Source of the DNA: Octopus vulgaris
Lineage: Eukaryota
Assembly: GCA_951406725.2 (NCBI GenBank)
Contig: OX597822.1
Coordinates: 67,642,001-67,706,000, forward strand
Reading direction: 5' to 3'
DNA: 64,000 nucleotides
This document shows, one piece after another, positions 2,504-37,960 of the stretch. The notes beneath the pieces were generated by a model. That model had not been told where the DNA came from. It saw only the letters and a program-made list of their open reading frames with translations, and did not search any database. Made by a program: the position numbers and the translations under genes. The number at the start of each line of letters is the position of its first letter. The stretch's first letter is position 1.

Positions 2504-2590
2504 TGCGTCTGAAGAGAGTGGTTTACTTCAAATCGATGCAATGTTTCCATTGATCATTTAAATGGAGCCACTTGAAACGACCGTAATGTA
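2504..2590 (+). ncRNA. Type I hammerhead ribozyme motif with long stem II
   Basis: Stem I TGCGT/ATGTA (2 wobbles), core CTGAAGA (2509-2515), stem II GAGTGG/CCACTT around a 58-nt domain, GAAA (2574-2577), short stem III ACG..CGT, GUA triplet. Confidence 0.65.
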
Positions 2591-2724
2591 TCAACACCGG
2601 TACATCCTTGTTACTTATATATATGTATATATATATATGCATATAATTTATATATATATATATATATATATATATATATATATATATATATATATATATA
2701 TATATATATATATATATATAAACA

Positions 2725-3152
2725 TAGGCGTAGGAGTAGCTGTGTGATAAGTAGCTTGCTTACGAACCACATGGTTCCGGGTTCAGTCCTACTGCGGGAC
2801 ACCTTGGGCAAGTGTCTTCCTCTATAGCCTCGGGCTGACCAAAGCTTTGTGAGTGGATTTGGTAGACGGAAAATGAAAGAAGCTCATCGTATACATGTAT
2901 ATATATATATATATATATATATGTGTGTGTGTGTAGGTGCATATGTTTGTGTGTCTATGTTTGTCCCCCAACATTGCTTGACATCCGATGCTGGTGTGTT
3001 TACGTCCCCGTAACTTAGCAGTTCGGCAAAAAAGACCAATAGAATAAGTACTAGGCTTCCAAAGAATAAGTCATAGGATCAATTTGCTCGACTAAAGGCG
3101 GTGTTCCAGTATGGCCACAGTCAAATCACTGAAACAAGTAAAAGAATAAAGA
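2725..3152 (+). mobile_element. SINE family B (tRNA-headed, CORE-like), near full length
   Basis: A/B-box-like head, MIR/CORE-like CCTTGGGCAAGTGTCTT segment, internal (TA)/(TG) tract, tail ...GAAACAAGTAAAAGA; about 12 copies in window. Confidence 0.9.
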
Positions 3153-3699
3153 GCATATATAGATACACACACATAAACACATACACACATACACATGCAC
3201 ATACGTATGATTGAATGCGCTCAACGCTCAGTGATTGAATCATTCTGGTTTAGGCTCTAATCTTAATCGCGTTAAACTCCCGCTGTCACATATTACCCGT
3301 ACTGGAGGATGGTCTATGTCGTTATACAAAGAGAACATCAATACTAAGAGAAAAGAACATGAGCATTGAATTGCCACTTCTTCATGTCATCTGTTACACA
3401 TGTTTCAGCATTCAGCAACGTATGAAGGCAAACAATAGATGACACACCTACAGAGCACCCTACAGAGCCAGCAGGGTGAGCTAACACATCGTCAGAGAGT
3501 TAAAGAGGAATTACAGGTGAGAGACAACCAGTGACCAAATTTAGACACAACTGGGGAGTGGGGAGTGAGGGGGGGATAAACAAGAGAGACACTCAACAAT
3601 TGTGGCAAAGGGTTATATGTATTTTATAATTAGTTTGACTCAGGCCGATATAGCTTCAGGTTTCGTGGGTGCGGAGGACACGACTAATTCATCGATTAT

Positions 3700-4115
3700 A
3701 AGAAGAGGGAGAGAGAGAAAGAGAGAGAGAGAGAGAGAGAGAGAGAGAAAGAGAGAGAGAGAGAAAGAGAGAGACAGTCAGACAGAGACAGTCAGACAGA
3801 CAGAGGCAGAGATATAGAGTGAGTGAATGAGTGAATGAGTGAGAGAGAGAGAGAGATGATGATGAGAGAGAAGGAGAAAGAGAGGAGAGAAGATAGGAAA
3901 AGGAGAGAGGGAGAGAAGGAGAGAGAGAGGAGGAGGAGGAGGAAGAGAGAGGGAAGAGGAGAGAGAAGGAGATACAGAGAAACGGAGAGAGGAGAGAGAG
4001 AAGGAGAGAGAGAAGGAGAGAGGGAGAGAATGTGAGAGAGAAAGTTGGAGAGAGAGAGGAGAGAGGGAGAAGGAGAAAGAGGAGAAAGAGAAGGAGAGAG
4101 GAAGGGAGATTTTTC
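3700..4115. repeat. Polypurine (GA)n/(GGA) low-complexity tract
   Basis: Plus strand almost entirely A/G. Confidence 0.9.
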
Positions 4116-4809
4116 AATTTGTATCCAAAAGAGACACACTTGCTTTAAACAGATATCGTTGCCGTTTGTTACTTTTATTCTTATTTTGTTCTTACAAAGA
4201 ATTCACTCGAAACGTTAGTCTTCTTCTGTTTCTTCTTCGCGTACGGTTCTCTAAGCACAACTTCTTATATTAATGTTTCTTTCATTTGACTTGTAACCTC
4301 TCACGTTGTCTAAATGTCTGTCTCCTATTCCTGTCGTTCCATTCGAGCCATTTTACACACACACACACATGCACAAACACACATGCACAAACACGCACAC
4401 ACACACACAAACACCCACACGCACATGCACACACGCAGACATACACCCGCATACAGACCATTTGTCAATTGAATAAGTACTTCGATAGAATAAGTACTGG
4501 GATCGATTTGTTTGACCAATTTGTTGAAGGCAGTGCTCCAGCATGGCTGCAGTCCAATGAATAATACACGTAAAAGATAGCTTTAATATTGAAATATGCT
4601 CTTGTTTTAATGTTTAAAAATCGATAGAGCTGGTGAGAATGCGAGACCAAACCGAGACATGCACTGTCTCCCGTAAGCGTTGTTTGTTATTGATATCGTT
4701 ATGAAATATATTCGAACATGGCGGCCTGGCGTGCTTCGTGAGGAAACAGTAGTAGCCGCCAGCATTAGGTCCAGTCAACGAATTTACATCAATTCTTAAA
4801 TTCAAGGTA

Positions 4810-35310: not shown

Positions 35311-36044
35311 TATTATCAATCGTCTTTGCCCCTGCGGCTAATAAAAGAAATGGCTGTTATTATTAATACTTGTCTATTAACATTATCACAGAATTTTTCT
35401 TATCGTCGTAGATACTTAAGACGTTGCATATATCTTTTCTTTGGTATTTTCTATTATAGCTTCACAGGTTTTAAATATTACTTTCACATTTGCTTAAAAC
35501 TGTCTTCCAAAACTCACTTAACGTAGATAGCCATCACCCCACCCCCGCCCATTCCACCTTCAAGCTTTTCTTCGCTTCACTTCGCCTTTCATTATGACAT
35601 TTCAATCTAAACTGCAGGTGTGGCGTGGAGGTAGCGGTGCTGGACGGAATGGTTATATTCCACGAAGGAAATTGAGTTGATGGGCGAGAATTGTTGGTTA
35701 GGACTGTGTGTCTGGATTTTTAAGGAGGAATTGGTTATAGTTCTGAGAGGAGAGTAAATAGATTCAAGGGTTGTGGTGCACCCACCTCACCCCCCAACGG
35801 TTGTGTTGATGATAGAGGGGGTACTTTGTCGTGCACCTGGTGTTGGCTGTGATGGTCATGGTTGTAGAGGTGGATTTACATGGTGATTGCAGTGTGGAAG
35901 GGTTTAATGGGATTGTAGTGTGAAAGGGCTTGTGATTGTGCTATTAGTAAGACGTTTATGATAATGTAGGTTCACGGTGAATAGGGTTGATGGAAGGGCT
36001 GTGATGGGGTGTGTTACTGGTCGTCGTAGTGGTGATAGTGGCGG

Positions 36045-36900
36045 CAGTAGTAGTAGTAGCAGCAGTAGTAGTAGTAGTAGTAGTAGTAGTAGTAGTAGTA
36101 GTAGTAGTAGTAGTAGTAGTAGTAGTAGCAGCAGCAGTAGTAGTAGTGGTGGTGGTGGTGTTGGTGGTGGTGGTAGTAGTAATGCTGATGGTGGTGGTAG
36201 TAGTAGTAGTAGTAGTGGTGGTGTTGTGGTAGTGGTAGTAATAATAATAGTAGTAGTGGTAGTGGTAGTGATAGTGGTGGTGGTGATGGTGGTTGTAGAT
36301 GTAGTAGTAGTAGTAGTAGTAGAGGTGGTGTTGGTGGTGATGGTGGTTTTGTCGCAATAGTGTGGTGGGAGTAACAGTGACGACGATGATGGAGATGGTG
36401 GTTGTGTTCACGATGATGATGATGATGTTGATGGTGGTGGTGGTGGAGGCGATGCTAATGATGTAGATGGTGACGTTTATAATAATGATGATGATAATGA
36501 TGTAATAGTAGCAGCTGCAGTAGCAACAGTAGTAGCAGTAGTAGTAGTAGTAGTTGCAGTAGTAGTAGTAGTAGTAGTAATAGTAGTAGTAGTAGTAGTA
36601 GTTACTATTGTTGTTGTTGTTGTGGTGGTGGTGGTGGTGGCGATGTTGATAATGACAGTAATGATGCTGCTGCTAATGGTGATGATGATATAATAGTGAA
36701 AGCATTGTGGAAGTTTTGTGTTTGGTGATGAATTTTTATTAATAGGGAAAGCTTAGCAGCAGCAGCAGCAGCGGTAGCAGCAGCAGTAGCAGCAGCAGCA
36801 GCAGCAGCAGCAGCAGCAGTAGTAGTAGTAGTAGTAGTAGTAGTAGTAGTAGTAGTAGTAGTAGTAGTAGTAGTAGTAGTAGTAGTAGTAGTACCACCAC
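36045..36900. repeat. (TAG)n/(GGT)n/(CAG)n trinucleotide field
   Basis: Direct reading. Confidence 0.9.
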
Positions 36901-37367
36901 CAACACCACCACCATCACAAGCAACTGCAACTACAACGGCAACAACGGCAGGTTTAGCAAGGACAGTCATTCTTGAAGTTTTGGTATCCCACGCTCAAGG
37001 ATTTTCTACAGGTAACCGTCACGTCTGGCTTGTTGTGTCCTTGAAGAAAGAATGTTTCAATCGGCTCAACGTAAATTGTATTGTCATTTCTTGCAGTCAT
37101 TACAAAAGGAAATAAAACAAATAATTACATCATTCTTAATTAAAAACCTTTATCTCTATCGATAATAGACCATATATATATATATATATATATATATATA
37201 TATATATATATATATATATATAATAAATATAAGAGAGTGGTCACTATATGGCTCACTCTAGCACCAGTTAATCCAAAAGGTTTCAACCACAAAAATACAT
37301 GTTTCCCATGAAAGTCAGTACGATTGTTAGCTCACACGGACAGGGCAAATAAAAAATAACAAAAATA

Positions 37368-37463
37368 CAGATTATTTTGGGACAATTGTTTCGCTATTAA
37401 TGAATTAAATGTAATTTTACTTACAAAAAAATCCACTTGTAGCTCGTCAGCCAAAACTATCTG
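37368..37463 (-). ncRNA. Type I hammerhead ribozyme, canonical core, 51-nt stem II domain
   Basis: Minus strand: CAGATAGTTTTGG-CTGACGA-GCTA...TAGC-GAAA-CAATTG-TC|CCAAAATAATCTG; 13-bp stem I with one mismatch and one wobble; palindromic stem III ACAATTGT; predicted cleavage between 37381 and 37380. Confidence 0.85.
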
Positions 37464-37902
37464 GATGAAATCCACTCAATCACACGCCAGATTTTACCAT
37501 AACGATAAATACGCGTGTGGTTCAATTGATTACACCCGACGTTATAATTCAAATGCCCCAACTAACAGCGCGCCAAACTTTCACGGAAAACAAATACAGC
37601 ATTTAGAAATAAATGCAGCATAATTATAATTAATTAATAAGGGTGAGATAATTAGATATATATATATATACACACATATACATATGTATAGAAATAAGGA
37701 TAAGATCGTTATTTAAATATCGAACTTATCAGGTGGCCAGCATGGAAATAAAAACCTTCAAAGGTAACAAGAATTATTAAAAATGATAATTTAGAGTATG
37801 TTGGGCGCATACGTGCATATATATGTATGAATGCATTCGTATATGTGAGTATACGTATGTTGTATATATATATATATATATTTGTATTTATGTACTGTGT
37901 AT

Positions 37903-37960
37903 ATTCCACTGATGAAGCAAAGCATTTCTTATGCAGAACCAGAAATCCGGGATCTGGAAT
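37903..37960 (+). ncRNA. Hammerhead motif with unpaired stem II base
   Basis: ATTCCA-CTGATGA-[26 nt with GCAT/ATGC hairpin]-GAAA-TCCGGGA-TC|TGGAAT; perfect 6-bp stem I. Confidence 0.55.

Follow-up and report, generated by a model that had tools for sequence, protein, structure and literature searches.

Minimal hammerhead ribozymes of type I are already known from Penelope-like elements (PLEs) and from retrozymes (PMC4209133, PMC8557442, PMC7229834), and a palindromic helix III is a hallmark of the dimer-type metazoan and PLE hammerheads (PMC4209133). A helix II published as 'large' or 'long' is one of 6–8 bp (PMC4209133, PMC13725137). Craig et al. searched for hammerhead cores at a spacing of 7–17 nt and put aside, as 'HHR_half_core', eight cases from Naiad elements in which the half-cores lie 35–50 nt apart (PMC8557442). 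The metazoan retrozymes without long terminal repeats (non-LTR retrozymes) have been proposed to originate as non-autonomous PLE derivatives (PMC7229834; 10.64898/2026.07.22.740005). In the literature searched we found no description of cephalopod hammerheads. Here we describe three hammerhead motifs, HHR1, HHR2 and HHR3, in a 64,000-nt stretch of the Octopus vulgaris genome (contig OX597822.1, positions 67,642,001 to 67,706,000, assembly GCA_951406725.2; hereafter the window), with helix II domains of 58, 86 and 51 nt. They are very probably bona fide type I hammerheads of the PLE or dimer type, with HHR2 belonging to a PLE of the Hydra clade, and with HHR3 (tandem and retrozyme-like) and HHR1 (older, and resembling a short interspersed element, SINE) most likely being carried by non-autonomous PLE passengers. 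The long-helix-II form is an abundant structural variant of a known system and not a new kind of system.

The window has a GC content of ~35% and is rich in TA, TG and trinucleotide microsatellites. It was searched on both strands with a neutral type I hammerhead descriptor consisting of CUGANGA, a helix II of 3 bp or more around up to 130 nt, GAAA, a helix III of 4–30 nt with at least one pair, U-H, and a helix I of at least 3 bp. There are exactly three matches, and these are the same three motifs that an earlier note on this DNA had proposed to be type I hammerheads:

2504 to 2590, plus strand: HHR1, type I hammerhead; helix I of 5 bp (ugcgu/augua), CUGAAGA, 58-nt helix II hairpin, GAAA, helix III cgaccg, UA; predicted cleavage after A2585.
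21381 to 21491, minus strand: HHR2; helix I of 3 bp, CUGAAGA, very stable 86-nt helix II hairpin (-37.8 kcal/mol), GAAA, helix III cagcug (palindrome), UC; predicted cleavage after C21384.
37374 to 37457, minus strand: HHR3; helix I of 7 bp (extendable to ~12 bp with one mismatch), CUGACGA, 51-nt helix II hairpin, GAAA, helix III caauug (palindrome), UC; predicted cleavage after C37381.

The earlier coordinates stand unchanged for HHR1 and extend a few bases beyond the minimal motif for HHR2 and HHR3, and the earlier stem II lengths of 58, 86 and 51 nt are exact. Stem III, described there as very short, is indeed short, but is better defined as a 6-nt C-NNNN-G block that is palindromic, in the case of HHR1 in the majority of its family. 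The type I core (C3-U4-G5-A6-N7-G8-A9...G12-A13-A14...A15.1/U16.1-H17) is complete in all three. Long-helix-II motifs have no bulge after A9, and their helix II spans 51–86 nt in the window and 40–100 nt genome-wide. Folding shows that the helix II domains of HHR1, HHR2 and HHR3 are each one long imperfect hairpin (z = -3.1, -7.5 and -4.2, respectively, relative to shuffles) and not stems of 3–4 bp closing a huge loop. Dinucleotide-shuffled sequence had been named in the earlier note as the appropriate control, and 300 dinucleotide-preserving shuffles gave a mean of 0.17 matches per window, and never three or more, against the three observed. Matches with a 6-nt helix III are expected 0.003 times per window from the same shuffles; the helix III lengths of shuffle matches are scattered over 4–30 nt, while those of the three real motifs are all exactly 6 nt. 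Judged from sequence, the three are real hammerhead motifs, far above chance.

The same architecture is found across the 2.8-Gb, 227-contig assembly. The strict pattern CTGANGAG-N{40,100}-CGAAAC-NNNN-GTC was matched exactly over the whole genome, with the pattern read backwards as the control, and the spacing between the half-cores was also varied:

Strict pattern with a helix II of N{40,100}: 10,317 matches, control 15.
Same pattern with N{4,39}: 713 matches, control 16.
Same pattern with N{101,200}: 79 matches, control 52 (background level).
Looser pattern CTGANGA-N{41,101}-GAAAC-NNNN-GTA: 33,940 matches, control 1,038.

Under identical core constraints the long-helix-II form thus outnumbers the short form by ~14:1 (10,317 vs 713). 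The looser GTA-type pattern, which is needed for the family of HHR1 (FAM1), takes in FAM1 relatives with different basal helix II sequences. By these counts most hammerheads in this genome have the long helix II, a 50–100-nt hairpin in place of 4–8 bp and a small loop, with tens of thousands of copies according to the looser pattern. The N{4,39} matches are mostly a single canonical small hammerhead, CTGACGAGAGGTCAATACCTCGAAACTCGAGTC, which has a 4-bp helix II and lies in 353-bp tandem arrays (e.g. G000:C1:180105947-180107390); this is a classical retrozyme-type family that coexists with the long-helix-II families.

The first 100 strict-pattern places listed fall into ~12 sequence-unrelated families, and 20 representatives were taken from the strict-pattern matches listed. 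Helix III pairs as a palindrome in 18 of the 20 when G-U is allowed, with the sequences CATATG, CATGTG, CGTATG, CCTAGG, CCATGG, CGGCCG, CGATCG, CACGTG, CGTACG, CAATTG and CAGCTG, and most representatives combine a long helix II hairpin with a helix I of 3–7 bp. In many families the base of helix II is a 4-bp stem that opens into an internal loop where the canonical loop 2 sits; other families have 8–13 continuous base pairs. A (TA)n run is present in the 350-nt downstream flank of 15 of the 20 representatives, compared with 23% of random window positions. One additional family is arranged in tandem with a 594-bp period.

Covariation among families was examined in an alignment of 24 real hammerheads that was anchored on the invariant core alone and not fitted to any pairing; it covers helix III together with 6 nt per strand of helix I and 7 basal nt per strand of helix II. 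Some of the 24 rows come from related subfamilies, which leaves ~12 independent families. The core, for which the search pattern had selected, is invariant in these representatives. Pairing is seen in 80.6% of cells, as compared to 54.7 ± 1.9% when the 3' partners are shuffled and 32–39% when they are slid by 1–3 columns, and there are 134 double-sided changes versus 54 in shuffles. The covariation score is 0.684 versus 0.207 shuffled, a value reached by 0 of 500 shuffles, and the signal is present in all three helices. The earlier proposal of an extended-stem-II class distributed over several families is borne out by this covariation together with the genome-wide excess.

The claim that such motifs are missed by standard searches also holds. 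At gathering score, Rfam gives no match of any kind in the window. The isolated HHR3 locus scores 30.0 bits against the RF00163 (Hammerhead_1) cut-off of 34, with all 45 model positions aligned and a 39-nt insertion in loop 2, and the isolated HHR1 and HHR2 loci give no Rfam hammerhead match at E<=10. The core and the order of the helices are those of RF00163, and the loop 2 insertion is where the motifs differ from it; the insertion accounts for the sub-threshold or absent scores, which reflect a limit of the model and are not a biological criterion. Over the whole genome RF00163 finds six matches, three of which are 108-nt matches to another long-helix-II family with helix III CGAUCG. With an E-value threshold applied to the window, the best 150 of 422 Rfam matches are all microsatellite-driven microRNA look-alikes; the TA and TG microsatellites produce dozens of sub-threshold matches to mir-3149, mir-297, mir-466 and others (e.g. 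27908–27981, 38177–38258 and 42190–42260), which are composition artefacts.

All three motifs reside in interspersed repeat families, each window element has (TA)n at its 3' end, and the ribozymes lie 40–200 nt upstream of that end. The most informative of the elements is the one that carries HHR2:

21209 to 24853, minus strand: FAM2, a 5'-truncated copy (3.65 kb) of a Hydra-clade PLE, comprising the end of the open reading frame (ORF; linker and GIY-YIG endonuclease, EN) and a 2.5-kb AT-rich 3' region.
24564 to 24853, minus strand: upstream piece of the FAM2 ORF, in a different frame.
23993 to 24589, minus strand: GIY-YIG endonuclease open frame (VVYQ...VYIG...), with no Pfam match.
21084 to 21208: (TA)n tract that borders the FAM2 copy on its 3' side.

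HHR2 is situated ~175 nt before the 3' end of the FAM2 copy. FAM2 copies, 93–99% identical, end at the same 3' position beside (TA)n (21209 in the window) and vary in where they begin (21688, 21746, 21822, 22303 and others), a signature of target-primed reverse transcription. The longer copies align without a break from 21209 to 24570–24853 and so link HHR2 to the GIY-YIG frame (24589–23993, minus strand). The window copy is truncated just after the reverse transcriptase (RT), and its frame is broken near 24575–24590 by a ~16-nt duplication relative to a longer copy elsewhere in the genome, L108; in addition, the linker reads CNFRNRNKC in the window, with one cysteine mutated, versus CNCRNRNKC (CxCX5C) in L108. 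Upstream in L108 are RT-like frames (which include FDIQNYY..., FIQFDIQNYYTSI, GSPDSAEV and LYRDDALF), followed by the linker and then by GIY-YIG. We considered whether the GIY-YIG ORF might belong to an element with an N-terminal EN (Naiad), and rejected this, since in L108 the EN comes after the RT frames. FAM2 copies at L107 and L108 have 5'-truncated partners inverted head to head, an arrangement that PMC8557442 describes as typical of PLE insertions.

The L108 frames, taken as the read-through protein of one copy, have 441 homologues, which are tagged PF26215 HTH_animal; the nearest named relatives are from the octopod Argonauta hians. By inspection there is one Cys only between the GIY and YIG blocks, and no CCHH in the EN core. 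Three full-length homologues (P0001, P0003 and P0011) were examined for the N-terminal RWK motif and the DKT in place of DKG that are given for the Hydra clade (PMC8557442): P0003 has IRWK and ADKT, and P0001 and P0011 have RWR and DKT; the genome copies examined are without the N-terminal part. Judged by its RT, linker and EN features and by its homologues, FAM2 is very probably a Hydra-clade PLE, matching the clade definition in section 11 of PMC8557442. It shares with the Hydra-clade EN+ PLEs of Craig et al. (2021) the order of RT and C-terminal GIY-YIG, the CxCX5C linker, the lack of CCHH in the EN core, (TA)n insertion, a hammerhead near the 3' end, inverted 5'-truncated partners, and presence in molluscs, and it differs in that the 2.5-kb AT-rich 3' region brings copies to >5 kb, as opposed to 'generally <3 kb' (PMC8557442). 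A second RT fragment, 47% identical to the FAM2 RT, lies beside a FAM2 copy at L049 (G000:C8, ~8.29 Mb; locus 2121–2306), indicating that further Hydra-like PLE families are present in the genome.

HHR3 and HHR1 are carried by shorter, non-coding elements:

37177 to 37658, minus strand: FAM3 copy; the unit is young, non-coding and 482 bp long, and here lies between two (TA)n tracts.
2386 to 2624, plus strand: FAM1 copy, an old ~240-bp non-coding SINE-like family.
2620 to 2722: (TA)n tract directly adjoining the FAM1 copy on its 3' side.

FAM3 copies are 94–99% identical and are often arranged at many loci in 534–535-bp tandem arrays, or in inverted pairs. An array at L034 (G000:C3, ~179.75 Mb) is built of a 1070-bp higher-order repeat with 99.9% identity, and alternate units have a dead core (CTGAAAAG); DNA-level amplification therefore also occurs. 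FAM3, with its 535-bp period, the 594-bp family and the 353-bp small-hammerhead family are all similar to metazoan non-LTR retrozymes (Cervera & de la Peña 2020, PMC7229834; Li et al. 2026, 10.64898/2026.07.22.740005) in being AT-rich non-coding tandems with one type I hammerhead per unit. In contrast to those retrozymes, which are expressed as self-cleaved linear and circular RNAs (PMC7229834), the FAM3 unit is somewhat longer than 150–450 bp, the long helix II leaves no canonical loop 1–loop 2 contacts, many copies are dispersed singletons at (TA)n, and circular RNAs are here a prediction.

FAM1 copies are 70–88% identical, with variable 5' truncation (5' ends cluster at query positions 37, 66 and 90) and a constant 3' end at (TA)n. 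Twenty-four of 45 copies retain an intact hammerhead core, and conservation is 0.93 at core positions versus 0.84–0.87 in the rest of the element. The majority helix III in the family is CGGCCG, a palindrome, from which the window copy differs by a G>A change giving CGACCG. In one subfamily the 5' strand of helix I has lost 6 nt and the 3' strand carries matching changes (GGUCAU/AUGACC vs UGCGU/AUGUA). HHR2 is the motif that lies directly in the 3' region of a PLE, and a PLE context is probable for HHR1 and HHR3. The earlier suggestion of non-autonomous PLE or retrozyme families is supported by the position of HHR2 near the 3' end of a PLE, with HHR3 in 535-bp arrays, and with the 5'-truncated HHR1 family and its fixed 3' end at (TA)n.

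Three other features of the window may be recorded here. At 32486–32870 there is a near-perfect inverted repeat between two (TA)n tracts, made up of two head-to-head 5'-truncated 3' tails that match L119 and L125 downstream of their ribozymes (another hammerhead family); the ribozyme itself is absent here, and the structure looks like a typical PLE-style inverted insertion. An abundant, but unrelated, short interspersed repeat has at least nine copies in the window (2744–3095, 8117–8229, 10572–10904, 16359–16529, 31083–31355, 51474–51730, 53443–53862, 61333–61658 and 63392–63694), and also flanks hammerhead loci elsewhere (L114, L116 and L128). Trinucleotide-type low-complexity repeats at 33330–36700 generate long spurious open frames (poly-I/N/Y/L).

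The closest match to the ribozymes themselves is provided by the minimal, dimeric type I hammerheads of PLEs (Cervera & de la Peña 2014, PMC4209133), which have the same type I topology, canonical core, short palindromic helix III and short helix I, G10.1-C11.1 in most families, a location in the PLE terminal repeat or 3' region, and many divergent families per genome. The difference lies in helix II, which is here a 50–100-nt imperfect hairpin and there 6–8 bp at its 'larger than usual'. Long helix II hairpins of 55–95 nt are also present at two loci encoding Hydra-clade PLE proteins in A. hians (L133 and L135; GCA_054771915.1), with helix III palindromes CTGCAG, CAATTG (twice) and CTTAAG at ~100–130 nt before (TA)n; some of these motifs have degenerate 10.1-11.1 pairs. 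Homologous PLEs in other ENA assemblies (L134, L136, L137 and L138/L139) have a helix II of 13–22 nt, compared with the 86 nt of HHR2, and in these the motif directly follows the ORF, with a microsatellite next. The comparison, in which sampling is small, suggests that helix II was lengthened specifically in the octopod lineage.

A working mechanism can be proposed from how dimeric hammerheads, PLEs and retrozymes are known to behave (PMC4209133, PMC7229834, PMC8557442, 10.64898/2026.07.22.740005). Long or read-through transcripts containing two copies (tandem, partial tandem or pseudo-LTR) would pair through their palindromic helix III blocks, and the palindromes together with A15.1-U16.1 would yield an 8-bp intermolecular helix III between the two copies. 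The dimer would have two active sites, and cutting after H17 would give unit-length RNA with 5'-OH and 2',3'-cyclic phosphate ends. The 535-nt unit RNAs from tandem FAM3 could be ligated into circles, and the RT and GIY-YIG endonuclease of the PLE would then insert copies of the unit RNA at (TA)n. The long helix II may stabilize the fold in AT-rich RNA that has no loop–loop contact, or may double as a hairpin for protein (RT) binding. RNAcofold predictions for two copies return trivial domain-swapped duplexes, and these have little bearing on dimeric helix III.

Several observations weigh against this interpretation. Published PLE mini-hammerheads show poor cleavage in vitro, also in dimeric form (PMC4209133), and cleavage of the present motifs is a prediction; moreover, the long helix II means that the canonical loop 1–loop 2 contact needed for fast cleavage is lost. 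Among the window motifs, HHR2 has a helix I of merely 3 bp, and HHR1 combines a G-U wobble at 10.1-11.1 with its mutated helix III. Covariation among copies of a single family, which the earlier note had expected, is absent from FAM1: in 40 copies tested over the full hammerhead structure there is no excess over shuffles (89.6% vs 89.4% paired, 10 vs 7 double changes, 39 of 500 shuffles), a null that is expected under neutral decay of dispersed copies and argues neither for nor against the fold. Pfam gives no RT or GIY-YIG match among the window ORFs, the L108 frames or the database homologues, so that the Hydra-clade assignment rests on motifs and homologues. Finally, FAM1, FAM2 and FAM3 share no 3' tails (SINE-partner test; z < 1) and no RT adjoins the FAM1 or FAM3 copies examined, and the case for tying FAM1 and FAM3 to a PLE partner is circumstantial.

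The poor cleavage of PLE mini-hammerheads bears on a different explanation, in which the hammerhead fold is kept mainly as a 3'-end recognition structure for the PLE RT or EN, with the long helix II and the three-way junction as the recognized features and cleavage negligible or incidental. The motif is near the 3' end in all families, unrelated families have just the fold and the (TA)n target in common, and Naiad PLEs thrive without canonical hammerheads (PMC8557442). We nonetheless consider this unlikely, as the catalytic nucleotides and the palindromic helix III are the conserved part across ~12 families, FAM1 is better conserved in its core than in the rest of the element, and a binding hairpin has no need of CUGANGA, GAAA or UH; the two roles are, moreover, compatible.

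It is quite improbable that FAM1 and FAM3 are retrozymes or satellites that spread independently of PLEs, using another RT or DNA-level array amplification, with their likeness to PLE hammerheads arising by convergence or capture. Their tails are dissimilar to that of the FAM2 PLE, their copies are not accompanied by an RT, and the L034 array, in which every second core is dead, shows amplification at the DNA level. Against this, they have hammerhead architecture and (TA)n flanks in common with the PLE, they show the same 5' truncation with a fixed 3' end, their tandem and inverted arrangements are those described for PLEs (PMC8557442, Fig. 2 legend), and, according to a preprint of 2026, vertebrate non-LTR retrozymes descend from PLE pseudo-LTRs (10.64898/2026.07.22.740005). 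Chance matching of short core words (CUGANGA, GAAA, UH) and permissive stems in AT-rich DNA, to which the simplicity of the motif, the zero Rfam matches at gathering score and the 3-bp helix I of HHR2 might point, has a negligible probability given the shuffled windows (0.17 matches, never three, and 0.003 with a 6-nt helix III), the backwards control (15 vs 10,317) and a cross-family covariation equalled in none of 500 shuffles.

We therefore favor PLE- and dimer-type hammerheads with an extended helix II. A stronger version of this, which we put forward tentatively and regard as doubtful, is that they constitute an octopod lineage-specific class in which the 50–100-nt helix II hairpin is a functional module, for example for RT binding or priming, or as a fold stabilizer in place of the loop contact. 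Ribozyme and retrotransposition signal would then be one structure, and to this design the PLE-dependent elements of SINE-like and retrozyme type would owe their spread to tens of thousands of copies in these genomes. Since Rfam sees almost none of these motifs and censuses assume a small helix II, cephalopods, and perhaps other taxa, probably have far more hammerheads and PLE-derived elements than have been counted. The natural series of helix II lengths, from 13–22 nt in other Hydra-clade PLEs to 50–100 nt in two octopod genomes, is well suited to studying the role of helix II in dimeric hammerheads, and bears also on whether the ribozyme fold doubles as a retrotransposition signal.

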